Positions 8,157-38,072 of a DNA stretch of 64,000 nt are shown one piece after another. Each line of letters starts with the position of its first letter. Position 1 is the stretch's first letter. This DNA is from Amphiscolops sp. MND2022 (Eukaryota), in assembly GCA_964187785.1 (NCBI GenBank), contig OZ076415.1:22506001-22570000 (forward strand). Direction: 5' to 3'. A model generated the notes under the pieces. It saw only the letters and a list, made by a program, of their open reading frames with translations. It was not told the DNA's origin and did not search any database. Both the position numbers and the translations under genes were made by a program.

Positions 8157-8309
8157 ATGAAAACCAGAGTCTCAAAACCTCGCCGAGCTCTTTCTTTTGA
8201 CCTGAGCCGAAACTTGTACATCGACGAAAATGACCTTGAGAATTTGACCTTTATAGGTCACGGGTCATTTGGTCACGTGTGGAAAGCCGACTACAGAACT
8301 CAGGGAACT
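8157..8309 (+). CDS. Kinase-WD40 gene exon 1 (Gly-rich loop); donor uncertain
   Basis: MKTRVSKPRRALSFDLSRNLYIDENDLENLTFIGHGSFGHVWKADYRTQGT. Only a weak donor (GTTCTT at 8310) gives a sensible in-frame join. Confidence 0.6.
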
Positions 8310-11300
8310 GTTCTTTTCACTCTCCGGAAACGTTTTGAGAATTGGCATCTTCAGAAAAATGCAGAGCATAAACCATAAAACATTTTTATTTAAGAAAAAC
8401 AAAAAAACTGAAAAATTGACATTTAGATTGAACTTCCATAGTTTTGCTTTTCCGAACCTTAATTTCAGAAGCCATCAAATTTTCCGTATTTAGCTTTCCT
8501 TGAATTTGAAAAAAAAACAGGAAACTTCGGCTATTTTTGCTACAATGTATTCAAATTACACTTTCATAATGCAAAAGATATATATGTCGTCGAAAAACAA
8601 TCGACCAAAATCTGAACGGTCATTTTCTATATTCTGGTTATCAAGCAGCGAAAACTTCGAATTTTATTGGTGACTGAGTTCAAGCAACTTTGAAACGTAA
8701 GTAGACATTTTCGAAATGATGTTAAATGGGGAAAGTGAAAGCCAACGTGCAGGGAAAACCAGTGGCCGTGAAAAAGGTCAATGTCCCAATTGAGGAGGAA
8801 GGGATGATTCTGAACTCGGTGAACCACCCCAATGTTATTCAGTACTACGGAGTCATTCACAGCCCCCCTAACTATGCGCTGGTGATGGAATACGCAGAGA
8901 ACGGGTCACTGGCCGAATTCCTTCACAAAGAGCAGCAGGCGATAGACTTCGGGTGCAAAGAGTCGTTCATTCAGCAGATTTTGTCAGGTATGTTTCAGTT
9001 AGTTACCTTTAGAGAAATGTTTTTTTGGGGCGGTAAGTTAGGGTTGCTGTGGTATAAAGTTGTGTGGACCACAAGTCCTAATCAGAATGTGTTCTAAGGT
9101 GCATTATAACAAAATGAGCGCGACTGTTACCGTGGAAAGTTTTTTTCTTTCCTTTGTCAGAAAACAGAATATATGCGTAGTGGACACTTTTCCCAGAAAC
9201 TACTGGACTACTGGACAGGCTGCGGAAACGCATATAAGTTAGTGCAAAGGGTCACCCTTTTCATTTATTCCATTGGTAACGTAACATACAAAACCGGACG
9301 AGACTAAAGGGTCCCCATCTCGATATTTTTTCGGCACTGTAAGACTCTTTTTTGAGAATTTTTCAATGTCTGCAAAGGGTCCCCATTCAATTTGATATTG
9401 ATATTTTGCAACGAATTGGATGTTAAAAAGTCCCCAAGGGTCACCCTTTTACATTCTTCTTAATATATATCCATCAATAAATTTTTTGAATACAGTCCAA
9501 ATTTTTTACGCTATATCCGAACTATATTGCGTTTTACTAAGGAGGAAGTGGACGTTCGAAAATATTGCGCTATATCCGAATTATGACGTTATATTCAAAG
9601 TAAATTGCGTTTTACTAAGGAGAATGCCGAGGTGCGAAAGAAAGCGCTTCCATGTGGCCCAGCACACTATATCTGAACTTTTGAAGCGTTTTCGGAGCAT
9701 GAAAGGCAGCCTTTTGGTGTTTCAACACTTTTTTGTGAATTTTTCATTTAAAAAAGTGTTGAGCATAATTTTAAAACTTTGCGCAATTCGAGCCCTTAGT
9801 ATAGCGCCGACTTTAGACCTTCCCGTATTGTTGTTATTTTCCGCCCATATTTCATATGGGAAAGGAAAATATTTAAATCAAACGGGTTTTTTTTTTTTTT
9901 TTTTTTTACAAAATTTGCCAAGATTTTATTTATATTTAAATTTAAGGGTGTTACCCATAGAATTCAACCCACATAAATTTAGCTTCGTGCGATATGTATT
10001 TGTAGAGATTTTTGAAGTTTTTTTAAAAAATGACGAAAATGACGAAAATGACCCCTTAATGACAAAATGACCCCGAAAATGACAAAAATTCCCAAATTTC
10101 TCATTTTTAAACATTTTTATGCAATTTTTGCCATTTTTTGAGACACCGCGAATTAGAAAAATGGACAAGATGAATCGAAGCTTTCTTTTCTTCGAACTTC
10201 TCAGCGTTTTTATAGTGCATTAGTTATTCTTGAGCCTCAAATTTATGTAGTTGTAGAACAGTTCGGGGCGGAAAATATCCCGCTCCTCAGCGGGCGTCTT
10301 GTTCTTTCTTTTCCAGCAAAATTTTCCGAAACTACTGGCCAAAGTTGGAAAGTTCATTTCATTTGGCTTCGATATCAGCGCGTGTGTCTGGCGTTGTGAT
10401 TGGAGCTGGAAAGCAAGTAAAAGTGGGCTCAAATCCCGCGTTGTGATTGATTTTTTGTACACTACTGTTCAGGTAAGCCGTTGACAATGCGATATTCATT
10501 CGAACGAATGAATTGTCAATGGCTTGAGTATATGTATATTTGCAAAAGTGGAGAAGAGCAAATGGTTCCCACTTCAGCTTTTTAGACGGCTCAGTGCGTC
10601 TGTTTCAATTTTCAACAATTTGAGAAAGTATTGAGTGAAATCATTGTCACTATGGAGTTTTTCTGATTTCCAAAATGGGGCGATCGAGATATCCTGTTTG
10701 GTTGTTAAACTGGAATATATTTCTTATGAATTTGATGGCTATTGGAAAACCTTCTACTTTTCGGTAATTCTGCACAACTGGGGCGGCTCACTTGTGCATG
10801 TGTTCAACTTCAGGTATGACGTACTTACACCATGGTGCTAACTTCCCAATTGTCCATCGAGACTTGAAGCCACAAAACATCCTGTTAACGAACAACTTCA
10901 CAGTCACGAAGTTGGCCGACTTCGGATGCGCGAAGCTGATTGGAGACGAGACAATCTCGGGATCTAACAAGGGCAGTTTCCCATATATGGCACCTGAACT
11001 TATCCGACAAGAAGGAAAACTTTCCAGGGCAGCTGATGTTTATTCGTTCGGAGTCGTGGCGTGGGAAATTTTGACTCAGAAACGACCTTTTGCTGGTCAA
11101 ACTGAATATCAGATTATTTTTTACAAGGTAAGAAAATGGTAATAACTTGCGTTAGTTTCGCAATTTAGCTCATAAATGAATCATCGATGGCCCATCGACA
11201 TGAAAATCGATCTTTGGTTCTTTTTCTTTTTACCTGACACTCTATAAAAACGCAATCTTATCGAATTTATTTCACTAAAAAGTACTTTTCAACATTTCCT

Positions 11301-14300
11301 AAAACACTCTAATTCACATTACGCACATGATTTCATCCAAGCAGTTGTTATTTTTCTGACAGTTTTCCAGTATTTTTGCTTAATTTCAGGCATGTGGGGG
11401 GTCAATTTCCCCATTTTTAGGTCATTGGCTATCGATGGAAGTCTCATGGATTAACCATGAATGGATCGTCGATTGTCAACCCATGAAAAATTTCCCATGA
11501 AGAGAAGACTTTCCCTTCATGGTCAAAAACAGAATAATTGAGTTTTTTTCTTCAACAAATCTTGGTTTTGGCAAATTTGCCATCATTTGTCAGAACTAAG
11601 CTTTATTAAACAAATGAACATCACTTGTTATATTTTCCATTTAATGATTTACAGATAAATTTACGTATTAAACTTTAGTAAGAAAAACTAAATTTCTTTT
11701 CAAATTAACTCAACTGAATGTTATTCAATAGCAACAAATCTAATTTCTGTTACCAGGGAGAAGGCAAAACGTTGCCAATCGACAACGAAGCTAACGTGGT
11801 GGATCCTTTCAAGGAAATAATCCGCAAGTGTTTCGAACATGACCGCAAATTGAGACCCAACTTTAAAGACATTCACAAAGCTCTCAACACCAGTCCGAAC
11901 TTGACAAACACTGACACTTCTATTTTCAGGTTTCCAGTTTTCCTCATCTCAAATTTTAGTCGGCGCCTTTATGAACAAAAATGCGAATATTGTAGTGGCA
12001 TTTCGTCGTGGTTTGTTCCGTTTTTTTTTCGAACCAGTCCAAGTGACCATGAAATTCTACAAAAATCCGCATATTACCAAATTGATTGAAAGGATCCTCC
12101 CTTTCATATTTTGAGTTATTTGATTGAATTTTAAAAATTGAGGGTTATAACTTTTGGCATTAGTCGACTTTTTTTAAACAGAAATTTCAATTTTTCAACC
12201 CAGTCATGATCACATGACACAACTCAGGTCTGACATCAACTACTCAAGATCAAGATCAAGATCAAACCCGTTTCTTTTTCATATTTTTAGTTTGAAAAAA
12301 ATAAACATTTTAATTCCCGAGGTGTCCTCTTTTTGGCTTTTTGCGGCACGGTGAGATTGAGAATTTTTGCAAAACGATTCTTTGACGCGTTGAAGTACTT
12401 TTGCGCTTTTTTTTGTTTGCGCTTTTTGCACCGACTAATACCGTTCCCGACTTATTAATCAAATTGTCTGTTTGAAAAATGAAATTTACACCTCGTGAAA
12501 TTTGTACGTTTAAAAAAACGGTTTTTCATTTTTTATCTATTTCAATAGTTAACTAAAGTTTATAATATTTGATTCGTGTGTTGTGCAGGTTGAGCCCTGA
12601 TTTGGGCAACATTTCTGCCAGTGGGGACAACAGTCACCTTGCGTGGATTGTTTACCCGCCAGAGGTGAGGCCCAGGGGTCAATGGAACCCAGAGAATGGC
12701 GCCCAACTGGCTGCCAGCAAGGACGAAAACTCTCTGATTCTGTTCGATGTTAACTTCTTGACAACTGTGCCCACCGCTGGCGATGATAAAACACCTGCGC
12801 CCGATATAGGTAAAATTGTAATTCGATAATCATGATGAAACCTGACTCTAAAACATCTCAAATTACTTTGCTTGAAAATTCGTCTCCGAAGAATTCAGAA
12901 AAAAAACAGACAATCTAAAACGTGCAAAATAACACCTTACCATCAAGTGGAAGCAACTGAAATGTTAATTGTGTTCATGGTACAATATAAGCAGAAGGAG
13001 TGCAAAATCATTCGTTGCTAATCTCACTGTTTAGTCTAATGTTATTGTTATCAGCGAATCAAAAATTTGCATCATGAACCAAATACATGAGCGCAAACGT
13101 GTATGGGAATGCAATATGTGAGCTCTTCCGTCGAAAATTGCAGAGCCGAAAAAAATTCAATTTCATGACAAAAGAGTTCGTAAAAAATATATACTTGGCA
13201 TCCGAATATTTTCACACCTTGGATTCTTGGATAAGATCCTGCATTATAGAAATTCTCAGCAGAAAGTTGAGACATTGATTTCTCTCGACAGATCTTCGCA
13301 TTAGCTTTACTATTGGAAACTTTGAGCAATGGACGCTGTGAAGGTTTCTCCAGAAAACAAGTTGAGCCCATTAAAAAAGATCAATTTGAGGAATCCCACA
13401 AACATCCCGGTAAACTCTGTAAATCTTGACAATTTTTCCAGCTTAGATTTTGCCAAGAATTCCAAAATTCCAAAGTTGGGATTTCTTGGAATCCGTGAAA
13501 AATTATTCAATTCCATAGTTTAAAAATTTCTTTAATGAACTGATGATGCATCTCTTGTTCGAAGAAAGACGTTTTATATGGGCATTCCTGAAATTTCTTG
13601 AAATCTGTCATCTTTAGGCCCCGAGTTGCGACATAAAGACACCGTGACTTGTTTCGCGTGGGGCAGGAAGTGCCTTCTTGCGGGCACCAGTGACGGGCGG
13701 CTGTGGCTTTGGTCGCAAGAGGGCGTTCTTCTGCGCAGAATCATCATCAAGCACAAGAGACCCATTGTCAAGGTAACTCATCTATGGTTACGCATTTATA
13801 CACTCAACATACGAAAGGCGATTGTCTAATTATTTTAAACGTTTAAACGTTGAGGCCCTATGCATGTGATCGTTTCATGACAAAGTCGGTGTTTAGCCTG
13901 GAATTGTATGAACAATTTATGGCCATGCATGAAAATGACAGGAAGCAGAATCGCTAAAACATTTGGATAACAGTCGTATAACTCTGTTGACACATTTGGG
14001 AACATATAATCTTTTTGGATAGAGCCGACAAATTAGCAAAGTTTTCGATAAAAACATTCGAGAATTACAGAAGCGTCATTTTCAATTATGCATTTGCATT
14101 GAACACGAGAAAAGAGTTCATTACGACCCAAGAGGAGACTTCAAACATTTACCCTTTGTGACCATAAAAATCTTCACATAATTAATGTCTCACAAAAAGC
14201 AGTAAAGCTGAAGAATAAAACATAGAAAAGCCACTGTTAAGATTTCTAGGGGATGGTGGAACCTGATTTACGTTGGAGCTTTTGAAGAGATTCATAAAAG

Positions 14301-17300
14301 GGAAGAGTCGTACAAAATGCAAGTAGCATACCCGTTGTGTAACCATCATCGAGCCTTTCGTTAGCAGCTCACACTGCAACTTATAATTGAATGATCATCT
14401 TTCCAATAGCCGCGCTATTTCTAGTTTTCTAATTCTGCGCAATGATTGTAACCATCAACCGTTTAATTTTCGTGCTCATCTTGTAACCTTTTCTCCAAAA
14501 GGGGTTTCCATGTCTCTTGATTTTCCGCCCATAAGGAAAAAAATTACTAACCGAGCGTTTTCTTCATTCTTTTTCTTCCAAAGTTTGCCGTGTTTCAACG
14601 TCGAACCCAAATTCAAAGGGTTCACCCAAAGGAGTTTTTCGGATCTGTTTGGAATCCGCCAAACCGACCGCCAAAGTCATCAAAGCAGTCACAAAATTAT
14701 AAAATGTTCCAATCTTTGAGCCTTCTATGCATTTTTGTACAGTTTTCAAACATTTTTGTGGGTTAGAACATTCAAAAAACGAATTCGAATTAGCCAGCTA
14801 TCCAGGGTGCTTTCTGAAGACAACTACGAAAAGTTTGGATGAAAAAGTGTCAAAAGGTACATCAAAGTCGCTGAACATGAACAAAAAAAAATTGTTCAGT
14901 TGCTCTTCGTATTTTCGTGCGTTAAGCATCCCGAAACTTGCGAGACGAAAAGAACAACTATCCAAGATGCTTTTATGAAATCTAAAACTTTTGTACAGTT
15001 ATCGCAGATTTTTCTAAGTAACAATATCCAAAAAATCCAAGATGAAAAGTTTGCTACAGAACACACTTTACTGAAAGTTGGAAACGTTTTGTTGAAAAAG
15101 TGTGTCAAAATAATTTTTAAAATGAAACTTTTCATCATTTGAACCTTTTCACGCAATTTTTGTAGTTTTTGGACGTTTCGCCAGCATCGAAAAATGAGAT
15201 CATCTTGAGTGCTCAACACTTAACTAGTTAGCTCTCAAAAAAATCTTTNNNNNNNNNNNNNNNNNNNNNNNNNNNNNNNNNNNNNNNNNNNNNNNNNNNN
15301 NNNNNNNNNNNNNNNNNNNNNNNNNNNNNNNNNNNNNNNNNNNNNNNNNNNNNNNNNNNNNNNNNNNNNNNNNNNNNNNNNNNNNNNNNNNNNNNNNNNN
15401 NNNNNNNNNNNNNNNNNNNNNNNNNNNNNNNNNNNNNNNNNNNNNNNNAAAGGTGCGTTACAATTGTAAACGTAATCGGAATATGTGATAAATATAACTG
15501 TATAGCGTAAAGGAAACGAGTTCAAGTGAACAAAACTCCTTTTCCGGAGACGTCACTTGAGCTCAGCATTTTAACCAATCACGTTGCTTCATTTTGCTGT
15601 ATTAGTACTGCTTTGATTATATAGTGGCCGAGTATGGCCAATTGACTCAATATGTGTACCTTGATACACACTTCTGTCAAATGGCCTGTTCCGGCCATCT
15701 AAATGAAATATACTGTTTGCACTTGTAATTAACCATGCTAGTCAGAAATTACCGTAAATGTACCTCTAGTGATGAATGAAAACCTCTGTACCGCTCGATG
15801 GACTTAGTAGACCCAGTGCTAATTTAAAGGCCGAATAAGGCTTTTACCCTCTTTCATTTTAGTGCTGGATTAATAAACCGGATCTGACCATTTTCGGTCT
15901 TGTTAGAAAGTGTGTTGTTTTGATAGTGTAGTATTATTTTAAACAAGCTGGACAAGTAGTATTTGATTTTGTTCCAGCCCATGCTAAATAATAGACGTGT
16001 GGCAACGCATGTCGCAGTGACTTTCCAAAGGGATGCCTTTCACATTCCGTCAATAAGTATTGGTATTTGTTGACAAGATGATGATGATGATGTTTTCATA
16101 AATACGCTACTTGAAGTTGCGGCTTGTATACCCGTTAGAATGTTATTCATTCGATGTTGAATTCTCAGAAATTATCTGAATGTTAGGAATCTTCCCAATT
16201 GGGACTTTACCCACATATGTGCTTTAAAGTGATGAATACTTCACCCGTCACAATGACGATGTCTATCCCGTGACCCGTTAGGGCCACGATCATATGATGC
16301 TTTCTTAATCAAAGAATCCGTGGAATGTGCTCATCACCTTCTTGGGAGTATATATACCTGTGCTCCTGTAGGAGAGGTCACTAATTCACATCTCTGCTTT
16401 GATAAATATTGAATTAATATAACGATTTTCAGTTAGTTTTCCGGTTCAAATAATTGAACTACTTGACCCGGTTCTGTCTTGATGCCTACCACAAGAAAGC
16501 AAAAGAAAGCAAGGAAATCGAGAGGAATTGAGATGCTCTCAGATATGGAAAACCTAGACATCATGCTTGGTGAAAATCACTTTAGCAGAAATGAGAGAGA
16601 TGAAAGCATCAGTAGTAATCAGGCTAGAAGACCTGAAAGTGCTTCAGGAGATGAATGAAAACAACCATTTGGATATAGGGAGCTTTGGTCCTGGTACTAG
16701 TGCCAATCATGGCCAAAATTCAACAGGAGGTAATTCAAGTGCCGAGATCAATAAGTTGTCAAGTGAGTTGAACTGAAGATTGTCTAGAGAACTAGATGAA
16801 ATGATGAGTAGTGTCAACACCCAAATCCAAAGAGCAATTAGTGATGCGATTAATGGTCAGATTGTACCGCAGATCCAATCCGTCCTAAATGCTGAATCGG
16901 GACAATCGACACTAAATAAGTGGAACGTTTCGTCCGAGAGACCGGGGATGAATTCCCAAGAGACCTACGGTGAGAAAGCTAAGAAAAACAATAGTGAGCA
17001 GCGTTTTGATTACCAAAACGGTAGTCATCCTAACTTACGCACTTACGACACCACTAATTCGGACAATTTTCTGTTTGGAACATTCAAGATATTCAGACAC
17101 CCACCGAATTTAAAAACGAAGCAAAATGTTATCTGGTCTTTTACGACCAGCACTTTAAAGTTTCATATCAAAAATCGCTGAATCAAACCAGAAGAACAAA
17201 CATATCCAATATAGAACCAATATGTCAAGTTTTTTGTCCAGTTGTCTTGTCGAATTCAGGCGTTGAAAAACACAGGGAGTTCCACGTTGGCACAAACTAT

Positions 17301-20300: not shown

Positions 20301-23300
20301 TGTCTTTAAAGATTTTATTTATAATTATGATTGTCATGTAAGATTATTTTTCTACAACCGAGGAAAAACTGGGCGCTATTATTAGCAGTTATATAATGAT
20401 GATTTTAGGATGATTCACTAAATTTGGTTGTCGAGTAACTAAAAATATGTTCCATAAACAAGAGTAAGAAATACATTCCTTCAGTCATTCTAAAAATGTA
20501 GCCACAAAGACCAGACTTTTTTAAACCTCCTTAAAACTTGTGCAATTTCCATTAAGTTTGCTCTAATTTCTGTATTTCATCATATTCAACATTGCCTTAT
20601 GATCAACTTCCTAAACTTTGTTTCAAATCTATATTATTGCACTTTCTTTATCTTTATTTATCCTAATTAGAATTCATCAATTCACTTTGACTGATCATGA
20701 GAAACAAAATAATCACAAGATCTAGAATGGGACAACCGCCCACGTTTTAACAATAGAGATAAGTGCTTCAGAAGCAGAAGCGTCACAAGGTAGTATGACT
20801 GTTACTGACCCTCTTAGTTACTTGGAGCAGTTAAATCAGCTGAGACCGAGAAGCAGACTTAAAGGAATTTGCACAAACTGAAAATGAGATTTGATAAAAG
20901 AAATGATAGAAAAAATACAGAGAATGATGCAAAAAATCAAGAGTGACAAAAACACACGATCACTCTCAAATAGGAAGAATTATGAGCACATTACATCGCA
21001 AATGGAAACGCCTAGTTTTGCACTGTACAAGGACGGTCAAATAAATGCATTCAATACGGATAATCAACAGGATAATTCTTTTAGACCCTTGGAGTTTAGT
21101 GATCTTAGCTCGCCGTTCAACCTGTGATTACTCTAAATTTCCATCTGGATGACACCGTAATTATAAATGAGGATCGTACAGGATATAAATGGTATCAGGG
21201 TTGATGTAAATAGTGTTCGTTCATGTAGATTGACTCTTTTGCTTTCGAATTTCCGCACGAAATTGTAATCACATTGAGATATCTTGCATGATACGGGGTG
21301 TGGTAGAGCACTTGTTGTACAGCTTGATAAAACAAAAGTGTGAAAATAATTAATTACACTATTTATTAACAACCTGTCAAAAATAGTAAAAGTGGCAAAA
21401 GAAAACAATCTGCCAATACAGACAGTTACGCCATACAATACAGTTTCTCACACTTCACCTTCTTTCGTATATCGAGTTCTTCAGCCTATTCAGCTAGACT
21501 ATAACATGGCGCTGCGCGCTGATGAAGATCATTCAAATTCCCCACTACCAGGACTGAATTACTTCTGGCAGGATGCTGAAAAGCCCCCTGGATACGACTG
21601 GGAGCAATGGATCCAATTGTTCGAGGTCGCAACATTGGCAAGACACTCAATCTCAGTGTCCGAAGTGTTAAGGGAGGCTGACCAACAGAATCCACGTGCG
21701 GCGGCTTTGATGGGAAATTTAGAAGAAATCCCTGCAAAAAGGAAAGTCGTAAGTCTACTCTACATCTCAATTGGTAAAAATGCAAGAAAAATGCTGATGG
21801 ACAAGTTCCCACGAATAAACACTCTACTGATCGAACTTCGGGAACTTATGCAAAATTGCGCAGAATGCTTCCAAATTCGACGTAACCGGACATTAGATCG
21901 TCACACGTTTCCTTCGAGAAAACAGAAACCGGCGGAGACACTAAATCAATTCTGGAATGCATTAAACGGACTCGCGGCGAGATGCAATTTCGGTGACCAA
22001 ACAGAAAGTCTAGTTCACGACATATTTGTTCTAAATATGGCAAATAAACAAGTGCAAGAAAAGCTTTGCACAGAACCGAAAGAAACGCCAGCTGAAGCTC
22101 TACAATTTGCGATAGCTTTTGAGGACGGGCTAAAACGCCAAAAATCGTATGGGTATATCAATCAAGAGCCCAAAGTAAAAGAAGAACCTATTTGCGCGAT
22201 TAGTAGCAACAACAACACAAGAGAATGCTGGAGATGCGGTGCGGGTAATTTTACCCTAGATCACTTGAAACGATGCAAGGCACCCGAAGCAATGTGTAAC
22301 TACTGCGGGCGAAAAGGCCATTTAGAACGAGTCTGCAATCAGAAGAAAAAGGACACTTACCCGAAAAATGGCAAACCCAGAAGATTTGGCAACAGATTGC
22401 AGTTGGTGGATCAGGAGGAAAGCGACAATGAAGACGAAGATAACTACATGGTGCTAAATGTTGAAGGAAACGAAAATGATTCAAAACCATTTTATATGGA
22501 AGGATTCATTAACGGCAACCGTTTCAAAACCATGATAGACACGGGTTCTCCTGTAACAATTTTCGGTCTGGACGAAATAAAATCAATCATGAAGAGGAAG
22601 GAGTTGCCAGTGCGGAAGATGATAGAAGGCGAGCGATACGTGGATTTCAATGGAAAACCACTGAAATTGCTGGGATATGTCTTTTGTGAACTACAGGTGA
22701 ATGACAGCTACATCAAAAAGGCGAGAATCCTAATTGCCCGAAGTGGATCAAAGTCGATAATTGGCAGAGAATGGCAAACAACACTCCGATACAAGCTACA
22801 ACCGCAAAAGGGTGAGTTAGAAGTAAATTCGATAGAGAAGAAAAGTGAACTAAGCGTAGAAACTAAGCAACTAGTCGCAGAATTTCCCGAACTATTCAGA
22901 AGGCAAGGTAAAGTAAATAATTACAAAATTAAAATAAACTTGAAGTCAGAAGCGGAAGTAAGTCAACAAAAAGGGAGACGAATCCCAATCCAACTGCAAA
23001 AAGCAGTGGATGAAGAAATTAGCCGTTTACTAAAGGAAGGTCATATCGAAAAAATTGACGAAATAAAGGATGACGTATTCATTCAGCCAACAGTCATCAC
23101 GGTCAAAAAGGACCGTTCAGTGAAAATTGCATTAGACGCCAGAGCGCTGAACAAAGCGATCGATAAAGATAGATACCAAATGCCAAATTTGGATAATTTA
23201 TTAGTTATGGTCGCAGAAAAATTGGATACCGAAGAAGGCGAAGCGTGGTTTTCATCAGTCGATATGACCTACGCATACAGCCAAGTCCCCTTACATCAAT

Positions 23301-26300: not shown

Positions 26301-29300
26301 TTAATTTATAAACTGAGTGTGAGTACCATTAACTCTATGGCGCTATTTTGGAATTCTTGAAGTACTTTGTAAATCGTTCCCCCTTCACCTCCTATTCTAG
26401 AGAGGGGAGTGTGGTAGAGCACTTGTTGTACAGCTTGATAAAACAAAAGTGTGAAAATATTTAATTACACTATTTATTAACAACCTGTCAAAAATAGTAA
26501 AAGTGGCAAAAGAAAACAATCTGCCAATACAGACAGTTACGCCATACAATACAGTTTCTCACACTTCACCTTCTTTCGTATATCGAGTTCTTCAGCCTAT
26601 TCAGCTAGACTATAACACGGGGAATATAAACGTTCTGGGAAATATACAGATAAAACCCGTGGCTTTTGTTGCGTTTTCATTCGCTTGGAACGTCGAGACT
26701 GATTCTTCCTTAAAGTTCAATTCCCAGTTCAGTTCGGACTAGAACATGGCAAGATCTTGAAACAAATTCACAAATTCGGTGGCCATAGTCCTGGCCGTTA
26801 GCAGATTTCCTGATCGATGTTCGAAAAAAACGTCCAAAAACTAATTTATCGAATCAACCGCCTGATTGCGTAAGCAACGGAAAATATTATTGTATCATTA
26901 TGAAAAGTTATCTTAGGCCGAGATCTTCAAACATCTTACCAAGCAGAGATCTCATAAACGAGGGCCCCCAAGTCTAATGGGAGCATTTTTTCAGTGTGTC
27001 GCATTTGGGGAGCCTACGGTTAATAAGGTGACAACGGATAATTTGAGATCCCATATAGCACTTGATTGAAAACCCAGATTTGATCTACAATTGATGGGGA
27101 AATTAAGCTTGGTGATTTTTAATGGTATCAATTAAATTGATTTTTTACTATTCAGACTCATTTTTAGGCTTAAGCAGAACCCAGGTTGACCCTCTTACTA
27201 GCATCTTGGCTGTCTTGGCAAGATCTTTCCAAATTCTTACTACATCTTGGCAACCATGGATCCCATGGCAAGATTCTTATTAAGATTTTACTAAGATAAT
27301 ACATTATTCCAAGATCGTATCTTATCACGATGGACAGAATTCTAAGAATATAAAAAACACTATTTCTTCAGTACAAGCAGCCGAAACTCAATCTGAATGC
27401 TCATTTCACCCAACAACGACTATTTCTACCCGTTTTATTATCAAAATGCTTAAACCCGCTGAAAAATTTTTGCATGCAAAAATGCGTGAAAAATTACGAT
27501 AACGTATTCTGGCTTCCGAAATTTTGACGAAAATCCTAATAACTGCTCACGTGTTTAAGACTGGGAAATGCGAATGCACCAAATGAAAGCTCATTTCGAG
27601 GGCTTTCCAAAACTTGTAATTCATTACTCCTGTCTATTCCAGAGACGGAGAAAACTGCTCTGAAACGTCCAGAGCCACTATCGGAAAGTTACATAGGAAA
27701 CACCTAAAAATCCGGAAATTTTTGTGAAATCATATCTCTAGCTATCTTTCAGCAGCCTTATTACTGCTAGAAACGGCGGTCATTGCCCCAGTTTGGGTAA
27801 TGATTCGGCTCGAGGCTTATCTGACGACGTTGCTAGCGACAGTTTTGCAAGTGATAGAACAATGAAATCAGCGCATCCCTAAACAAAAAGCATATGGACT
27901 CTTCAATCAAGTTTTATAACTTGCTAACAGAAATTTTAATGTCTAACAATATAAATCTGCAAAAATGTTGATTTCTCTTGATAAGATCTTACCATGACAT
28001 CTTGCAATTCTTGGCAAGATCTTGCCAAGATCTTGGAAAAATCTTAGCTAAGATCTTGGCAAGATCTTGGAAAAATCTTAGCTAAGATCTTGCCAAGATC
28101 TTACTAAGATATCCATGGAGGGTCAACCCGGTAACTGATTATAGGAACTACGTGATAAGAGTATGTTTATTGAACTTGTTAAAATGAGTCCATTAAAAGT
28201 GATAGTAAATATTGCCTCTAAAACTATGCTGAAACGATTCTATTCAGTAGTGACTTTTAAGAATACTGAACAAGACGGGAACGATTAAAGTCGGCGCTAT
28301 ATCTAATTCTCAAAAAGCGCAGTTTTAAAATATGCGTAGGACGGTTTCATGAAAAACTCCTGTTTTCGAATCTCCACCTCCTCCCTAATAAAACGGAATA
28401 TAGTTCGGATATAACGTCAAAAGTTCGGGTATATCTCTTCTCTTCGAATATTAAGTAAAAAATTCGTATAGTATTGAAAAACACTTATTGAATATATATT
28501 GACAAAACCTAATACCACTCAAAAATGAGAATTTTGAAATAGTCTCATAGTGCCGAAAAATCTGAAAGAAGACCCTTTCGGATTTTTTAACATCCATTTT
28601 GTTGCAAAACATCAAAAAAAACTGGAAATGGGGGACTTTTTAGTCTCGTCTGGTTTTGTGGGTTACGTTAAAGGGCGACTAAGTTTCTACTAAGTTTTCT
28701 ACACTAAGTTTCTACTGGCCGGACTTGGCCTTAGTAGTTTTGGTAGTTACTGTAAAAAGTGGAACTTTCCGAGTGAGGTCTGTGGTCTTGGGAAAAAAGG
28801 TCACTGTAAAAAAGCGCGGTTTCACAAAAAGCGCCTACTAAAAAGAAGGTTAATATAAAATTTATTGGGCACATTTTTGGGAAAATTGAACAAAACAGGT
28901 TGGAAACGTAATAAAGGAAACCGGTTGAAGGTTTCAAAAATAACATAAAAAGGAGTAATTTGTAATGACGTCATACTTCATTCAGGTTGAGTGGAACTTG
29001 GACTGCAGTCTGATCGGAGTGCTGTGCAGAAGTGACACTCATGAGAGGGGCACTGACTTGTACGTAGTCACCCTAGAGACTGAATTCAGTGCCCTCCGCA
29101 TTCTCTCCTTCCCCTCTCCCACAACCACCCTCGTGTGGAGCAACAACAAAAACGACCTCCTTGGTGAGTGGGCCACTGTTTCGAAATATTTTGGGTTGTG
29201 CACAAAAAACCACAACCCACCCCATCTAAAAAAGTGTCAGACCTCATGGGTTCCTGGATAATGTCCTTCTGATTCGTAGTGGAGGTATTGTACCGAAATT

Positions 29301-32300
29301 TTAAATACTCCCATCTGTGATGAATTCCCTTGAACTTTGCATCTTGAAATGAGGAGCTTTGGCGGCTAATCAATCCATGTCTATTTGCTTTAATCGGTGC
29401 AAGACGTCTTGAATATCTACGAGACTCTGTGTTTCGAATATGCAAGAAATTGGTAGGAGGAAAGGGCGTCCAAGTCTGTTTTGGTATTAAAGTCCAAAAA
29501 AAGACTTTGAAAAAAATGATCTGAAAGTAAAAACCGATTTAAAAACTTGTTGTATGATTTAGAGCACTCGAGGTTGGCTTTCATAAAAGTCAGCCGCATC
29601 TATGGCATTAGACTCTAAGATTTTTGTATTTTTTTCAGTACAGAAAAAACAGTATTTTATTAGACAATGTAAGGTGACACTTCGTATTTTTTATTCAAAG
29701 TTTTTAAATCTAAAATTTTCAGAAAGACCATTGATTGTATGTTGATCTTTTTATGTATGCAGCCTGCTGCGAAGGTCACAGAGTTCATATCTTCAAGAAC
29801 GACGACTTCTCTTTGTCTGCCCCGAAAACAGGCCACCAATCGGAGATTGTGAGTGCAATCTGGTCACACAAGAGCAACTTCTTGGCTCTCGCCTCAAAAA
29901 CCATTCTGCAGATATTCTCAGTGGACTACACTGAAGACTCCAAAATGAAGGTACGTACACATATTGGTGTATATTGGTGTATATTGGCATTGAAAACCAA
30001 GGGGTGAAAGGTAGGTGATACATTTACCAAAAACATCGTGCCAAAAATCCTTTAAAAAACTGCTACGAGGGCAAAAACTTGGGTTTTTTTGTTACAAAAT
30101 ATCTGTCGTATATGTTCTGAATGAATGATTCGTACATGATTGATTATCACACAATTTTGATTCATTTTGATGCTTTTCTGGATACATCTCTACGAGATCA
30201 ATTAACCAAACGAGTTCGAGAGCTTCGCATAAGAGATCGATTACTTCAAGATAACCCTTCTCTGAAAGTATGTTTAAAAATTGCTAAACGAATGGACGCG
30301 GGATTTCTACATCTGCCCTACTCAAAAATACGAAATTCACTGAAACTGTGCTTGGTATTACTCACACTGTACAGCGGTTTAAATCGAAGTTCAGTCAACA
30401 AACGTCAAAATCTACTGCTAAAAATAGCCATTACGTTTTCGTTCTGGATCTAAACTACATTTTGCTAACAGTAAAGATTGTCCTGTTACGGACAAGAAAT
30501 GCAAAAACTGCAAAAAAATTGGTCATCTTGCAAAAGTGTGCAGTGATGCGAGTTCAAATGTCGTTGTTACAAACTCTCTGGAAGAAAATTTTTCTAAACC
30601 CGTTACCCTTACTGTGAATAGTCTTTGTAATTCGATTCTTCCGGAATTTTTCAAGTAATCCTTACAGTTGGACAACACAAGTGCTGTATTTGTTGTTGAC
30701 AGTTTAGCCAAGGCATCAACTTTTTCTTAAAGATACATTTGACAAATTATTTCATAACAAAAAGTGCACTAAAAACCAATAAAAACATTCTGGTTATGGT
30801 GGTTCTGCAATTGATGCTCATGGAATTTTTAATTTCGAATCAATGAGTGGTTCTTTGTCATTCAGACATGACTTTTATGTAGCTCATGGAAATTCTTCGA
30901 TTGGCTTCGACATTCCAGACAAACTAAAACTTGCAATATTGATAAACGATACACGCTTGAGTCGTGTACATACTTGCATACGAAAAACCGGCCCAGAGTG
31001 TATCCTCAAACAGAAGTTTCCGAAATTGTTTGATTCTGATACTCTTGGTCATGCAGAGAATTTTGTTTTGTCTTCAGCAAACGATGAACCAATTAGTCCC
31101 AATAATTCGAAAGCTCGTTTTCTTCCTTTTGCAATGGAAGACCATATCGAGAAGGAATGTAAAAAAGTTTGTTCACTGGGTGTCCTTCAACCGTGTACCA
31201 ATGCTGATAATGATTGGGCTAGTCCTCATGTTGTTTCATGGAGAAAAAACGGCAGTCTTCGGCTTTGCTGTGACTTGCCAGAAGTGAACAAAGCGATAAA
31301 AAATCCTTAACCTTTACCTAACATTGACTCTACAAAAAATTCAATACCCAATGCAAAAGTTTATTCAAAAATAGACTTATCCAATGCTTACCATCCACTT
31401 CCAGTCGATTCAAACACTCAACGTCTGCTTGGCTTAATTTCACCCTGTGAACTTTAAAAAGTTCTCAAAGCACAATTTGGGTTTCGAGACGTTCCTCCAA
31501 AATTCCGAAAAATGATGGACATATTCCTAGCTGACTTGAAAAGTTGTTTCAGCTTGCTTGACGACATCATTGTTTATGGTTTTACAAAGGAAGAACATGA
31601 TGAAAGATTAAATTATGCATTGACTAGATTGCAATCCAATGGATTTGTAGCTAATTATGACAAATATGAGTTTGAGAAAACGAACAACGAATGGTTTGGC
31701 CTCAAACTGGGTCTGAATGTATTTGCTTTTCTTGAGAATAATTTGACTTCAATTTGCTGAAATTAAACTTCCTTACAATAAACAATCTTCAGCTTTTTCT
31801 CTAGGATTACTAAGTCACAATCAAGTAAATTTTTGTGTACTAATTATTCTTCTGAAGCTGCCGATTTGTTTAAATTACTTCTTTAAAATGTTGTCTTCAA
31901 GTGGACAGAATGTCATACAGAAGGTATCAAAGGCTTTCTAAAAAATTTTAATTCGTGCTAAACCTTTGGCAATAAATAATCTTTTAGCAAAACGATTGTT
32001 ACATGTGAAGCTTCCAAAGTTAGAATCGCTGGTGAATTATCAAGGCTGCAAAAAATATCGAAAACAAAACAGATTTATTTTTCTCTCGTTCGTTACACGA
32101 ATTTGAAAAAAAGTATAGCGTTCCTGAATTGGAATTAATAGCTTGAATTTGTACTTGTGAACAATTCGAAAGATTCTTGTGGGGTGAACACTTCACATTG
32201 AAGACTGACTATAAATCTCTACTGCATCTTATAAATTGTGAAATTGGGGACGGTGTTCGTCCACTGAGAATTGCACGTACGTTGGTCTGCCAGGTTATTA

Positions 32301-35300
32301 GGCTACAATTTTAGTATAGTACACAAACCTGTAAAAGACAAAACTGTGGCTGATGCACTTTCGCAATTACCTGTCAATCGTTCATCTAGTGATGATGATT
32401 CGTTTGTTATAAATGCCCTTTTAGTGACTTGTCTGCTTTCACAGTAGAGGAAGTCGACTATGCTTTCAAACAGGACAAAGTTTTAGTCAAAGTGTGCAAT
32501 TTTTTTACTTGGTTAGTCCAGACGGAATGTGATGGATGAAATGTTACTACTTCATTTTGCAGTTCGTAATAAAGTTTATTGATGGGCTAAATACAGTGTA
32601 GGCCGAGGTGCAACCATTGTAATGCCTGAAAGGTTATATTAAAAATTGTGGGAACAGATGGTCAAAAGTTGTCCAGCTTGTTGTAAGACTGATAAAGCAC
32701 AAGTTCGTTGAGATGTTCCGCATGCAAAAATCATTACAGCAGATGAAAAATTTGCAACGATCAATATGGATTTTAGTAGTCCTTAAAACGATGCACCGAG
32801 TAACTTTATGTAGTTACTTCTTGTTGTTGATGAATACTCGAGATGGCCTGACAACTGTGCGCTTCCTAACACACAAGCGAAACAAGTAGTTGTGTCTTTA
32901 AAAGATTATTTTTCTCGTTTTAGGATACCTGAGTGTAATTCGCTGTGATGAAAGTTCTTCATTCACCAGCGCGGAGTTCAAAATGTTTTATCATTCATCA
33001 AGGTGATGCCTTGAAGTATAGTCCATAGTATTGCCCTCGCAAAAATGGTCTCGTTGAACGATTCAATCAAACCATACGAAATTTGTTGCAAACCAGTTTT
33101 GAAGATTCACACAGCTGGTACAATACATTGAATTCCGTGTTACAAACTTATCGAAGTATAATTCATCACGCATTGGGAAAATCCCCGTATGAAATGGTTT
33201 ACGGGAAAATGAGATCGAAGTGTACAGGTCTTATGGCAAAGCTTCCATCCAAGTAATTAAATATTAAAAATGTTTTCCCAGGTCTATCGACGCAGAAACA
33301 AAATCATTTCAAAAAATTCCATGTCGGTGGTTGGGTTCGAGTGAAAGACCCGATTCGACAAAAAGGAAAACTGCATTACAAGTTCTTCAAACCACAGAAA
33401 ATACTTGAACGAAAAAAACTACTGTTACACTTGATGATGGTCGAACATGGAGTTTATCGCAAGTTGCCCCTGCCTCAACTAAAAGAATTGAAGATCTCAA
33501 CTATTTTGATGATCTGGAGTTGTCTCCTTCCGATAAGACGCAATCGGATAATCATGCCTCCGATGTTCCAATAAGACGGTATCCTCTCAGGAATACAACG
33601 AAACAAATAACTTTCAAGCGAGACAATGAAATGTTAACGTATAGTCTAATATGTTCATACGTTTCTCTTATATGTTATTCCTTGAAATCTTCTTACGACT
33701 AGTATTCAAAGAGGAGGGGATGTGGTATATGTTCTGAATGAATGATTCATACATTATTGATTATCACGAAATTTTGATTCATAATTGACTGAAAAAGTTA
33801 CGAAGGTTTTCCCGCAGTCCAAAATATGAAAAAATCCTCCCAAACTAAAAACAGCGTAATAATGTAATTTCAAATCTTTTTGAGCTGAGTTAACTTTATC
33901 TCTTTACTCTTCTGACGGGGGACTACTGGTTTGTTGTAGGTAAGGTCAAAAACAGCCATGTCCAAACTGGGTGAGATAGAATCCGTGGCGTGGCACCCGT
34001 CTGTGGCTGAAGAGTTGTTTGTGAGCAACTTCTCGGAAGTGTTTCTCATGAACATCGTCAAGAAGACGCATCTGAAAGTGTTCACTGCGCCCCAAGAACA
34101 CACCCTCGGCACATTTTCACTCAACCCCAACGGGGAAGCCATGGGTTGGTTTGTATTAAATAATATGAAAGATAATATAATTACGATTGAATTTTTTCTG
34201 GAACATTACTTTATTACCCAATTTTTGAAGACATTTTATAACTCTTGTTAACAACCATGGTAAAACATGGTAAAACATCTAGCTATCTTTGCTAAATCTT
34301 AGACACACCAAAGCCAAAAAATGGTTCATGTTTTGCAATGACCTTGACCATGAGATCTAATGTCCTGACAAGTTACTCTGATCCAAACTACGTAATTTTC
34401 AGAAATTGCAGCACTTTCGTTTTCACTAATACTCAGGGGGACGACCAAAACAGACACCAAAAAACGTAAAATAAATTTGGCCGTACAAAAATAAAATCGG
34501 TAAACATCAAAATCATCATTAGCAAAATATAAATTCAGCAGAATAATGTTTCCCATTCCAAATCTTTATTCCATATCGTAGATATTAATACTATGTTCGC
34601 GAATTAGATTTTTAAAATAATATTTGTGGCCTTTTTTCCAATTTCACTGCCCATATAAAAAAAGCTCCATAATTTTACTGTAAGAACAAAACACATCCGA
34701 AGAATGTTTTGATTTAATTTTTGACATTGCACTCATGATGAGAACCATGCATAAACATGGCAAACGCTCCATGTCTTCGGAAAAGAGTATGAAGATACTA
34801 CTTTGTTTGCCATTTTTTCGGCAAGATCGATTTATCTTATTGCAAGAAATACCTTTGCTTTCAAGAAGCTTTATCTGGAAGATAATTATGCTAACTATCA
34901 TTCCAGTAGTGCTGATTTCAGAGGTTCCAAATCAAATTCGAACAAAACTTTCTCGAAATTAGGATAGAGTTTCCATTTTGGATTACTTGAAGCAACGTTT
35001 TTAGGCAAAGCGAAGGCTACCGCCATTCAATTTTGAAAGGCAAATTCCATGTTTGTTTGTCAAAAAAATGTGACATTGACCAACTTCGTCAACTTTGAGC
35101 CCTTATTTCTGGTCATCTATGATCGGTATGCGTTTTGTTTCCCCAACAAAATACACGACTTTGAACTACTTTCCAATAGAAAAAGTTTTGTCAACGGATG
35201 TTCCAGCATAGACGTTTCCCGTTAAAAAACTGATAGATCGAATACGAACACCAGTTTATAATCAGTTCGCTGCTATTATCATCGGAACCATTCAAGCTAC

Positions 35301-38072
35301 TGGCATGATGCATATAAATTTTTTCATTGACTTTTTCATAGAACAAATTTCATCCCGCTCCTTCGTGCATTTATTCAAAGAAAATGTTCCCTGATCAAAG
35401 GCGATATTTAACGTTATTTGGTTTTCTGAGGGATATATCTTCGAGGGTAATTGGGATGCAGTTAAAATTCTTCCTCCGAAAGATGACCGATGAAATTACA
35501 CATGTTCAATGTAGTGCCCGAGTGTTCAACCAGAGCGGGCTCCGTCATAGTTTCAATTCGTGAGTATGTTTGCTCGGTTGAATTTGAAATCCCATTTCCA
35601 GCCAGTTGACTATTAAAATATCAGAAACCATTGGAGTCACTGGCATATATAGATATTTTTCATGGCGCATCAGTGGAATTTTTTCATGGATGTAACTACT
35701 TGGTGCATTGTTTGACAAAACTTGATCATTGATCAAATAGACTTTTATCCAATCTAGTTTTCTAATGCCTATCTTCCAGACTATTCGCAATACAGATAAT
35801 TTGTATCCTGGATTCATTTGGGGTCACAGTAGTATTCGTCGCAAGCCTTGCGTTAAGCACCGTTCGCCTATATTTTCCCATTGGTCCAAATCATTTCTCG
35901 AAAGTCAAGTTTAATCCAAGGTCTATGAAATGTGCATTGAATCAAATGAAACAGATCGGCCCAATTTTGTGTAATTGTTAAATTGTTTCTTGGATTGCTG
36001 AGAAACTTTAGCCCTAAATGGACTATTGGGACGAATTCGTACCAATTAGTTTCTGAAAAGTTTGAAGGCACTAGCTGACCGTATGGTAAAGAAAACCCTT
36101 GAATAGGAGTTTTAGACAACATTACATAGCATTGCACGCATTTTCACGAAATATTGACTTGATATCTCTGAAATCAAGAAACGGGACCAAAAAATGAAGC
36201 AAAAAAACAGAGGACAGGTGTTCGGTTTTTCCAGTCTCCGTTTGTGGCAATTTCCCACTGGTATCATGGTTGGGTCGCAGCAACTCTTGGGGACAAAGTC
36301 GTGAGTCAGTTTGGTGAAGCCGTTCAGAAATCAATTTGAAAACCCTGATTGTCTTCCTTCGAACGCGCTATAAATCGTTCGTCGGAGTTGAATAGTTTAG
36401 GAGATATTGCGGTTGAAAGTTTAAGCACCATGGTTATGGATGTCTCCCGAAAATTCCTCGTCTATTCAGGGTTAATGGTTTTTAGAAAAAGTAGAGATTT
36501 TTAGCCAATGGAAAACTTCCCCGTTTGAAGCATCATGCTTCAGGCGAGCTGGAATAACGTACGTCCCAGGAATAACGTCTAAAGCATGTCATGCTCATTC
36601 CCAATCTTAATACATTGAGTTTAAGATGTTATTACTTAAAATGTTATTCGCGCCTCTACAACTTTTAGACTAGCAATAAATTCCTTCGCCAAGCAAAAAT
36701 TATCAAAAAAACAGTTCCCACGGCTGTGTGCACTTCTTGCCTCTGATGCTTCATGAGATTGTTATCAAATTTAGACATTTTTGCAGGTTTGCTCGAAAAA
36801 ATAGTAGTTCCCCTTTAGGTCTTGACTTTTTTTAATTCGACTCATTGAGTATAAAAAAACTTTGGACATTCATTTACATTGATAATGATGTCGGTTGTCT
36901 CTTTAACTTATCTCTTTGCCATTACGTAATAATGTGATTAACCATTTGGCTTATCAAATGTGACGTAAGAGGCTAATTCTTCAGTCATCTCTGTCTGATG
37001 CAATTAAATAACTCAACAGCAGTTGGTGCCTTAATTTCATGCTGCGCCCATTCATGACCATCGATGCTACATGAATACTACCATTCAAACTTGCAAGAAT
37101 CTGAATGGTGACAGTAGTCTCAGATGGCTATGCAATCCCCTCGCTTTTGACAGCATAGGCACCTACGGGGCACAGGCGGTAAAAACAGGCAGGTACAAAG
37201 ACAGGTACGTCTGCTTTGACCTCTAACCGAGCACAAATTATTGCGCAGTTGAGCTCAGGTAGCATTCAGGAAGCAGCAGTCTAATGTCTTGTATAATCGA
37301 CTTCCAAAAATTAACCGAGAATGCAAGGCAAAGGAAAAAATGAAGTCATGTTGGCTATAGCAATAATGTGGTATGCAAAAAAAAGAAAACAAAAAATTTC
37401 CAAGTTCATGCTTTAACCATCGCATAAAAAAGTTGACAATCAGTAATGAAAGTTTTATATTGATCACATATGCAAATGATATCTACAAATATTAGCAAAT
37501 TTTAACCATGTATGTATATAGCTATTTTTCAGGACGTGAAAATAACTTGCGAAATTTAAAAGAAACACTTTCGGAGCAATCTTTTGTTCTCATCAAATTC
37601 TGATTTTGAAAAAGGTACTTAAATTAACAATTTACATAAATGTTGAATACACAGGGCTTCAATCACCAAGTAAAGTTTTATTTACGGTTCACTTTTTCTA
37701 ATTTAAAAGAAATACAAGAAAAAAAGAAAAAATTTCATTTCAGCAATCTTTGAAGTGGAAACGTGGACGCTACACCTCATCAACTTGAAAAACTCTTCCA
37801 CAAAAAGCGAAGATGAAAGACCTACCCATGTTTCCAAAATTCAACTCATGAAAAACGACCAGCTTCTGAGTAAACCCGTATGGAGTACGGATGGAAGCAA
37901 ACTTTGCGTAGCAGTAGAGTATGCCAAGAATAACATGAACCTTTTCGATTACTCGTTGCTCATTGTGGATCTGCAGAAAGCATTTCATCTCACCTGTTTA
38001 TTGCTGGTTAAACCCAAAAATGTGTCCAATTTGGTCAAAGTTTCAGCTGCTAATCGAACATCCACTATGTAA
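8157..38072 (+). CDS. TKL (MLK/ZAK/TAK1-like) Ser/Thr kinase fused to C-terminal TBL1-like WD40 propeller, 10 exons, about 716 aa
   Basis: Exons 8157-about 8309 (tentative), 8753-8987, 10814-11127, 11757-11929, 12589-12809, 13618-13772, 28986-29163, 29763-29950, 33940-34144, 37744-38072. Junction phases from exon 2 onward are 1,0,2,1,0,1,0,1 and all match. Kinase motifs: GHGSFG, VAVKK, HPNVIQYYG, HRDLKPQN, DFG, YMAPE, DVYSFG, RPNF. WD-like blades follow. Confidence 0.8.
8753..8987 (+). CDS. Kinase-WD40 gene exon 2 (kinase subdomains II-VIa); acceptor uncertain
   Basis: GKPVAVKKVNVPIEEEGMILNSVNHPNVIQYYG...LVMEYAENGSL...QQILS; donor gtatgt at 8988. Confidence 0.85.
10814..11127 (+). CDS. Kinase-WD40 gene exon 3 (catalytic loop to subdomain IX)
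   Basis: Acceptor ttcaacttcag; GMTYLH...HRDLKPQNILL...KLADFGCAK...GSFPYMAPE...DVYSFGVVAWEILTQKRPF; donor gtaaga. Confidence 0.92.
11757..11929 (+). CDS. Kinase-WD40 gene exon 4 (kinase subdomains X-XI)
   Basis: Acceptor ctgttaccag; GEGKTLPID...IIRKCFEHDRKLRPNFKDIHKAL; phase-2 donor gtttcc. Confidence 0.85.
12589..12809 (+). CDS. Kinase-WD40 gene exon 5 (first WD40 blade)
   Basis: Acceptor tgttgtgcag; (R)LSPDLGN...GQWNPENGAQLAASKDENSLILFDV; phase 2 in, phase 1 out; donor gtaaaa. Confidence 0.8.
13618..13772 (+). CDS. Kinase-WD40 gene exon 6 (WD40)
   Basis: Acceptor tcatctttag; HKDTVTCFAWGRKCLLAGTSDGRLWLWSQEG...HKRPIVK; donor gtaact. Confidence 0.88.
15249..15448. other. Assembly gap (200 N) inside intron 6
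   Basis: Run of N characters. Confidence 0.99.
15449..17050 (+). mobile_element. Probable LTR-retrotransposon remnant or long solo LTR carrying a decayed gag-like ORF (16482-17050)
   Basis: MPTTRKQKKARKSRG...SGDE*, then after a frameshift and a stop ...EINKLSSELN*RLSRELDEMMSSVNTQIQRAISDAIN...NLRTYD, ending at ...TACGACA with an abrupt switch to AT-rich repeat DNA. The family assignment is inference. Confidence 0.4.
19128..19939. mobile_element. MITE-like non-autonomous DNA transposon (family A), 812 bp
   Basis: About 34-bp TIR cccagtg[g/t]aaaatatcttgaaactcttgccaaga with 1 mismatch; subterminal arrays of CAAGA(A)TCTTG; no coding capacity. Confidence 0.8.
21299..26617 (+). mobile_element. Ty3/gypsy LTR retrotransposon 1, full length, young but coding-defective
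   Basis: 208-bp LTRs 21299-21506 and 26410-26617 (1 mismatch), 5-bp TSD CGGGG, PBS TGGCGCTGCG at 21507, PPT AGAGGGGAG at 26401-26409. Domain order gag(CCHC)-PR(DTGS)-RT(FIDD)-RH(CDAS)-IN. Confidence 0.97.
21506..26101 (+). pseudogene. gag-pol of gypsy element 1 (frameshifts near 23875 and 24990, TGA at 24172-24174)
   Basis: MALRADE...; CWRCG..H..C and CNYCGRKGHLERVC knuckles; IDTGSP; VFIDDILI; ELELLAVVW, DHKAL; HFGHAG..CSEC; LDFAGPF; TDPG; GNGKVERMIRT. The 3' end is approximate. Confidence 0.93.
27179..28132. mobile_element. MITE-like element (family B), about 954 bp
   Basis: TIR acccaggttgaccctc / gagggtcaacccggt; CAAGATCTTG subterminal tandem arrays (about 28015-28110); homologous second copy at 40149-40830. 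Confidence 0.75.
28540..28660 (-). repeat. Dispersed repeat family C (cc[a/g]gacgagactaaaggg...ttttcggcact module)
   Basis: The same module is seen at about 9293-9350 (+), 48660-48910 (+), 54590-54740 (-) and 55040-55150 (-). A companion module (tccgaa.ta.attgcgttttactaa) occurs near 9520-9640, 18780-18900, 28370-28450 and 54350-54445. Confidence 0.65.
28986..29163 (+). CDS. Kinase-WD40 gene exon 7 (WD40)
   Basis: Acceptor cttcattcag; VEWNLDCSLIGVL...SFPSPTTTLVWSNNKNDLL; donor gtgagt. Confidence 0.85.
29763..29950 (+). CDS. Kinase-WD40 gene exon 8 (WD40)
   Basis: Acceptor tatgtatgcag; ACCEGHRVHIF...TGHQSEIVSAIWSHKSNFLALASKTILQIFSV; donor gtacgt. Confidence 0.85.
30104..33781 (+). mobile_element. 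Degenerate Ty3/gypsy element (different family) in intron 8
   Basis: 61-bp LTR-like matches at 30104-30164 and 33721-33781 (5 mismatches); PPT aaagaggagggga before 33721. Remnants of gag (LRDQL..IRDRLLQ, CKNCKKIGHLAKVC), RT (WASPHVV, KNGSLRLCCD, LDDIIVYG), RH and IN (NGLVERFNQT), with many stops and frameshifts. Confidence 0.85.
33940..34144 (+). CDS. Kinase-WD40 gene exon 9 (WD40)
   Basis: Acceptor ttgttgtag; VRSKTAMSKLGEIESVAWHPSVAEELFVS...TFSLNPNGEAM; donor gttggt. Confidence 0.83.
37744..38072 (+). CDS. Kinase-WD40 gene exon 10 (last WD40 blade and stop)
   Basis: Acceptor atttcatttcag; AIFEVETW...KPVWSTDGSKLCVAVE...LLIVDLQKA...TSTM*. Confidence 0.82.

Follow-up and report, generated by a model that had tools for sequence, protein, structure and literature searches.

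A probable single gene joining an MLK-like protein kinase to a divergent WD40-type propeller in Amphiscolops sp. MND2022

Introduction

Do the protein kinase exons and the WD40-like exons that follow one another on a contig of Amphiscolops sp. MND2022 encode a single protein and, if so, what kind of propeller has been joined to the kinase? The stretch of DNA analysed here, referred to as the window, comprises 64,000 nucleotides of contig OZ076415.1 (assembly GCA_964187785.1, positions 22,506,001 to 22,570,000 of the forward strand). An earlier note made from the letters of the window had described a TKL kinase fused to a complete TBL1/ebi-like WD40 propeller. We consider it likely that the locus is a 10-exon gene for a protein of 716 amino acids in which an MLK-like TKL kinase is followed by a short Ser/Thr-rich linker and a roughly 420-residue divergent WD40-type propeller. 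The window as a whole is AT-rich, with a GC content of about 0.37; its introns are long and retroelements are numerous.

Results and Discussion

One reading frame runs from the kinase into the propeller

Ten exons, K1 to K4 and W1 to W6, are found on the plus strand between positions 8157 and 38072 (Table 1). With the exception of the start and stop ends they are bounded by canonical AG acceptors and GT donors. Spliced together they give 2151 nt, i.e. 716 codons plus stop codon, with no internal stop, so that the junctions downstream of the kinase stay in phase through to the stop as had been claimed. Residues 1–291 make up a protein kinase, and residues 293–716 a beta-rich, partly WD40-like region. 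The existence of one continuous ten-exon frame leading from the kinase to the propeller was confirmed. At the border between the two halves (11929/12589) the predicted phase 2 splice was found: K4 ends with AG before its GT donor and W1, which is preceded by a pyrimidine-rich tract and an AG, opens with a single G. An in-frame stop lies two codons upstream of the ATG at 8157, which leaves no upstream exon able to add a LisH or any other domain, and similarity to the orthologs described below begins exactly at this ATG.

Exons K2 to K4 match the Pfam families Pkinase and PK_Tyr_Ser-Thr with E values down to 4e-28. The full set of catalytic motifs announced by the earlier note can be read in the spliced model (GHGSFG, VAVKK, EEEG, HRDLKPQN, DFG, APE), and the catalytic motifs are conserved in all orthologs. 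The nearest solved kinases in phmmer searches against the PDB were ZAK/MLT (5e-25), CTR1, DLK, MLK4, MLK1 and TAK1, with one EGFR entry also among the best matches. Judged by these best matches, not by a phylogeny, an MLK-like member of the TKL group is a fair description of this kinase, which appears to be of the Ser/Thr type and looks active. The MLK-family MAP3Ks (ZAK/MAP3K20, DLK/MAP3K12, MLK1/4, TAK1/MAP3K7) and plant CTR1 provide the closest solved kinase domains, with E values of 5e-25 to 7e-21 for the C-lobe half, and share with the window protein the HRDLKPQN loop of the Ser/Thr type as well as the complete motif set. By contrast, the SH3, leucine zipper, SAM and TAB-binding regions of this family are lacking; no exon gave a Pfam match to an MLK accessory region (SH3, leucine zipper, CRIB, SAM). 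Moreover, only about 25 residues precede the kinase of the window protein, and a beta-propeller-like region comes after it.

The fusion is conserved in five other assemblies

The fusion was tested by comparing six loci, namely the window and loci from five other assemblies. A representative search with exon K3 led to a 172-amino-acid open reading frame (ORF), P0006, with 95% identity, and from there to a 301-kb ENA contig, ctg87688 of ERZ26859043, which harbors the nearest ortholog. A search with P0006 yielded three more relatives and a profile search with exons W4–W5 another one; these loci are L005 (NCBI GCA_013332895.1), L006/L008 (ERZ25071359), L007 (ERZ25878734) and L009 (ERZ25071366).

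All ten coding segments are present in ctg87688 in the same order and on the same strand with 75–94% amino acid identity, while the introns are unalignable. The ortholog model consists of seven exons that encode 714 amino acids in one ORF. The K1/K2, K3/K4 and W4/W5 introns of the window are absent from ctg87688, which proves the respective joins at the base level. In L005, L006/L008, L007 and L009, too, propeller exons come after the kinase exons in the same orientation; L009 contains the complete gene within 7.8 kb. Thus, the same fusion, for which the earlier note had suggested to search related genomes, is present in five other assemblies.

Window protein and ctg87688 ortholog are 87% identical, compared with 77% for the DNA. 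The kinase half shows 0.074 and the propeller half 0.097 nonsynonymous substitutions per site (dN), and synonymous substitutions (dS) are saturated (above 2 or undefined). Low dN combined with saturated synonymous sites indicates strong purifying selection on both halves. The best-conserved stretch of the C-terminal half is formed by the last 64 residues (W6b; 95% amino acid identity). The fusion is therefore old within its clade and kept under purifying selection.

Kinase and propeller very probably belong to one gene, as the earlier note had claimed. Two syntenic neighbour genes, i.e. a kinase gene ending near 11929–12087 and a propeller gene with an unrecognised first exon, would be compatible with the absence of transcript data, with the fact that the kinase frame runs into a stop at 12087 if the junction intron is retained, and with the distance of 26.5 kb between the halves in the nearest ortholog. 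Such an arrangement is nevertheless very unlikely in view of the junction itself. The intron between the halves measures 659 nt in the window, about 0.4–0.65 kb in L009 and L007, 5.6 kb in L006 and 26.5 kb in ctg87688, but only 55 nt separate the K4 donor from the W1 acceptor in L005, and this leaves no room for a second promoter and first exon. Neither the window nor L005 has a methionine in the W1 frame, and conserved sequence between K4 and W1 was not found in any pair of loci compared. In all six loci K4 ends with the residues FR and AG/GT, a single base of W1 precedes a conserved (L/F)(S/G)(P/S) codon run, and phase 2 is preserved on both sides. Sequences that would be read beyond the K4 donor are unrelated between species whereas the donor itself is conserved.

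The locus might, alternatively, be a decaying pseudogene, or its parts might have been falsely joined over an assembly gap, given that 200 N and about 15 kb of transposon-rich sequence lie between W2 and W3. We regard this as extremely improbable because the ORF is intact in the window and in the ortholog, dN is far below the saturated dS, and the exons flanking the gap follow one another within one gene, with correct order and strand, as they do in four other loci. The intron of about 15 kb that contains the gap (15249–15448) is bordered by two phase 0 ends, i.e. those of W2 and W3. In the nearest ortholog it is 515 nt long and contains no extra exon, and all propeller exon lengths are identical; no exon between W2 and W3 was detectable in the orthologs, where these two are spaced by 0.5–3.2 kb. 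Adjacency of W2 and W3 in the orthologs, together with matching phases and lengths, makes the reading frame independent of the unread letters, and the scaffold join across the gap is consistent with the gene order seen in the other assemblies.

WD40 character of the C-terminal half

Pfam, PDB and structure searches of the propeller were run exon by exon or on the W4–W5 piece, which is contiguous in ctg87688 and was therefore searched and folded as one segment of 134 residues. A four-species profile of W2 (A1) matched dozens of WD40 proteins in the PDB with E values of 1e-12 to 1e-3, led by RACK1 (2.6e-12) and SIF2 (5.4e-7) and followed by IFT140, WDR1, CIA1, SEC13, CDH1 and Notchless; TBL1XR1 (2.5e-3) and the WD40 domain of LRRK2 (0.045) ranked lower. 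With W4–W5 the best match was CIAO1 (1.3e-6), and SEC13, CIA1 and TBL1XR1 (0.23) were also found; CIAO1 was the sole remaining match (2e-5) of a three-species profile (A4). The AlphaFold (AF2) model of W4–W5 consists of two four-stranded antiparallel sheets with a predicted local distance difference test (pLDDT) score of 70–80 in the core. Foldseek related this model to WD40 propellers with a probability of 0.99–1.00 and a TMq of about 0.55, including those of WDR26, WDR91, COP1, ERCC8 and RACK1. Language-model (Atlas) neighbours are generic beta-propellers, and a manual parse divides the 424 C-terminal residues into about eight strand quartets. These data show the WD40 character of at least three blades. 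CIAO1, SEC13 and RACK1 are the best sequence matches of W4–W5 and W2, and the modelled blades have WD40 topology. However, the matches fall on different blades of different proteins and are not collinear, and thus reflect the type of repeat, not orthology.

Several observations weigh against the overall reading, in particular against a complete propeller. Pfam WD40 stays below threshold on every exon (best PF00400 match, W2, E 0.04), the remaining Pfam matches of the propeller exons being likewise sub-threshold and distributed over assorted propeller families. Profiles of W1, W3 and W6 match nothing meaningful among all PDB sequences, and W1 gave no Pfam match. The AF2 model of W6 is of low confidence and partly helical, and hhalign between exon profiles detected no significant internal repeats. 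Closure of the propeller and its blade number are suggested by spacing and partial models. With regard to expression, searches of sequencing runs for the organism listed no RNA-seq run, and the gene model has no transcript support; the four runs that were listed cover 99% of the sampled words, also those from introns, and probably derive from DNA of the assembled sample. Finally, L006, L007 and L009 have a methionine just before a conserved ISA(S/G)GD motif, and a propeller-only isoform may exist in these species.

Is the propeller derived from TBL1?

The earlier note had assigned the propeller to the TBL1/ebi family and proposed that the N-terminal LisH and F-box-like region had been exchanged for a kinase while a TBL1-like docking surface was kept. 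SIF2 is the yeast homologue of TBL1, and Sif2p is an 8-bladed propeller. SIF2 is also the best single-stretch natural match for W2, the stretch extending over blade 2 into the beginning of blade 3. The matches of W2 and W4 to TBL1XR1 (chain positions 112–145 and 208–266, respectively) are spaced as would be expected for blades 2 and 5, and the manual parse allows about eight blades, as in Sif2p. Of the collinear blades described by the note, these two weak TBL1XR1 matches are in register. W1, W3 and W6 lack a TBL1 match at E values of up to 10, and W5 has none in the PDB searches.

Despite these likenesses, which leave some small probability of a very remote relationship, descent from TBL1, ebi or SIF2 appears unlikely. 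The window protein shares with this family a C-terminal propeller of the WD40 type with possibly about eight blades, but its similarity to the family is no better than that to unrelated WD40 proteins. TBL1XR1 reaches 15–21 bits (E 0.0025–0.23) and is outscored for the same queries by CIAO1, SEC13, RACK1, IFT140, WDR1, CDH1 and Notchless as well as by SIF2; about twenty distinct natural proteins rank above it with the W2 profile, and its match vanishes with the A4 profile. The 50 Foldseek matches listed for the W4–W5 model do not include TBL1. Animal TBL1 propellers are very conserved, and a recent derivative should score far better. Several residues on which the assignment was based vary in distant orthologs, where WNP is replaced by WSP, HK-P by RN-QP, and GHQ by SHQ or HHQ, and the residues cited are typical of any WD40 blade. 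LisH and F-box-like regions are absent from the protein, which runs from 8157 straight into the kinase, and there is no conserved upstream exon. Hence, the label of a complete TBL1/ebi-like propeller went too far, and the sequence comparisons do not support a recognisable TBL1/ebi orthologue. The link of the kinase to the NCoR/SMRT-HDAC3 corepressor is likewise not supported.

Intron turnover and mobile elements

The locus shows marked intron turnover. None of the five other loci has the K3/K4 intron (11128–11756), and at least ctg87688 and L006 lack the K1/K2 intron (8310–8752); both introns were compared with positions 8810–9202 and 9999–10485 of L001. The W4/W5 intron, which is missing in ctg87688, is present in L008 and L009, and K2 is interrupted by an intron in L005, L007 and L009 but not in the window. 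These differences point to recent gain at AAG/G-type sites or to repeated loss. The K1/K2 and K3/K4 introns were also considered as candidate 'introner'-like elements; neither occurs a second time, be it within the window or at the orthologous loci.

Table 1. Exons of the kinase-propeller gene and associated features in the window
Feature	Position	Strand	Description
Exon K1	8157..8309	+	Start codon, short N-terminus, glycine-rich loop GHGSFG; 80% amino acid identity to ortholog; weak GT donor at 8310, several orthologs lack this intron and the window then has two additional residues
Exon K2	8753..8987	+	VAVKK lysine, alpha-C glutamate, hinge; phase 0 to phase 1; Pfam Pkinase E 1e-10; 83% amino acid identity to ortholog over the tblastn match
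Exon K3	10814..11127	+	HRDLKPQN catalytic loop, DFG, APE; Pfam Pkinase E 4e-28; 94–95% amino acid identity to P0006 and ortholog
Exon K4	11757..11929	+	End of kinase domain and Ser/Thr-rich linker; AG/GT, phase 2
Kinase-propeller intron	11930..12588	+	659 nt; no similarity to any ortholog
Exon W1	12589..12809	+	Linker and first propeller-like blade (ISASGDNSHLAW...WNP); conserved acceptor and phase
Exon W2	13618..13772	+	Clearest WD40 blade (LLAGTSDGRLWLW); ends in phase 0
Assembly gap	15249..15448		200 N, within intron W2-W3
LTR retrotransposon	21295..26620	+	Inserted in intron W2-W3
Exon W3	28986..29163	+	Propeller-like blades (VEWN...LIGVLC...VVTLETEF); starts in phase 0; 81–82% amino acid identity to ortholog
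Exon W4	29763..29950	+	Blades with GHQSEIVSAIWS; 91–94% amino acid identity to ortholog
Degraded retroelement	30783..33700	+	RT/integrase-like ORF fragments in intron W4-W5 (RT, reverse transcriptase)
Exon W5	33940..34144	+	90% amino acid identity to ortholog
Exon W6	37744..38072	+	Last propeller-like segment and stop codon; 50% identity in L009

Several introns of the gene carry mobile elements. The long terminal repeat (LTR) retrotransposon in the W2–W3 intron has 215-nt direct repeats that are 99% identical and 5111 nt apart, and encodes an 858-amino-acid gag-pol-like ORF with an RVT_1 domain; it is a young element. The degraded retroelement between W4 and W5 is weakly similar to pol of an LTR element in the ortholog contig. 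In ctg87688 the junction intron contains a complete LTR retrotransposon. The element is flanked on either side by a copy of a region with a 359-amino-acid ORF encoded on the opposite strand (L002 4372–5451 and 18931–20010); these two copies probably represent long LTRs that include an ORF. The region immediately upstream of the gene contains a direct repeat (positions 1–1200 and 6698–7900 of the window) with a spacing of 6697 nt. Its two copies show 100% identity over at least 300 nt and share ORF fragments up to about 1.2 kb; they are probably the LTR pair of a large element or the product of a recent tandem duplication. A dispersed repeat of a few hundred bases (68–85% identity) is located at 9224–10012, with copies near 18780–18869, 28269–28670, 43836–43986, 48651–48802 and 54205–55143, both in introns and in intergenic DNA. 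Its 41-nt core also occurs in the ortholog contig (L004 7725–7765; 90% identity), and it may be an element common to the species that resembles a short interspersed nuclear element (SINE) or a miniature inverted-repeat transposable element (MITE).

Downstream of the gene, the minus strand contains a 609-amino-acid open frame (51171–53000). Among the Atlas clusters it is nearest to those of lamin-tail-domain proteins (LMNTD1/2-like, score 0.93), and it has no Pfam match at E 0.001. This is an animal-type gene unrelated to the kinase-propeller gene. It is followed by a near full-length LTR retrotransposon of the Ty3/gypsy type (55850–60500; gag, protease, reverse transcriptase, RNase H, integrase) and by a second, partial and nearly identical copy of the same element (62244–63998).

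Relation to known kinase-WD40 proteins and possible function

Combinations of kinases with WD40 repeats have precedents, and the view of the earlier note that the architecture is not a recognised one was too strong. LRRK2 is an animal kinase with a C-terminal WD40 domain that serves as a docking or regulatory platform. In Dictyostelium the repeats of the myosin heavy chain kinases (MHCKs A–D), which are alpha kinases, target the enzyme to myosin. Fourteen Dictyostelium kinases contain WD40 repeats, including CZAK of the TKL family (PMC1420674). The window protein resembles CZAK, MHCK A–D and LRRK2 in that a protein kinase is combined with C-terminal WD40 repeats. It differs from LRRK2 by the absence of ROC-COR, ankyrin and LRR domains, and from the MHCKs in that its kinase is not an alpha kinase. 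In the test for LRRK/ROCO membership, Pfam searches matched neither a ROC GTPase nor a COR domain, and only about 25 residues lie before the kinase, which begins near residue 26. We found nothing in the sequences that would suggest common descent with CZAK, the MHCKs or LRRK2.

We found no description of this kinase-propeller family, and the database matches are unannotated ORF fragments from the five other assemblies. None of the 150 matches listed in the representative search with K3, mostly multi-kinase proteins, carries propeller exons. Searches with W6b and with the W4–W5 profile, under a length filter that excludes full-length eukaryotic proteins for single-exon queries, returned only orthologous ORF fragments and no named relative. 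On the basis of these searches the family, found only in a few related animal assemblies, appears to be lineage-restricted.

By analogy with LRRK2 and the Dictyostelium MHCKs, the propeller might act as a built-in docking or regulatory module of a cytoplasmic MAP3K-like Ser/Thr kinase that brings the enzyme to a substrate or an upstream partner, or gates its activity. The Ser/Thr-rich linker between the halves would be a possible region of autophosphorylation. The docking role, the kinase activity, the completeness of the propeller and its blade number are inferred. A more far-reaching model, which we consider unlikely, sees a clade-restricted MAP3K-like family whose TBL1/SIF2-type propeller tethers the kinase to corepressor-type partners or, more generally, a hard-wired kinase-sensor module created by one ancient phase 2 exon shuffling event. 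Such a module would be analogous to the C-terminal sensor domains of ZAK.

Our study adds a conserved, selected case of domain shuffling to the expansion of TKL kinases in animals, in which an MLK-like catalytic domain is combined with a fast-evolving beta-propeller. Should a partner of the propeller be found, it would identify a new route by which MAP3K-like signalling receives input or reaches a substrate in the clade.

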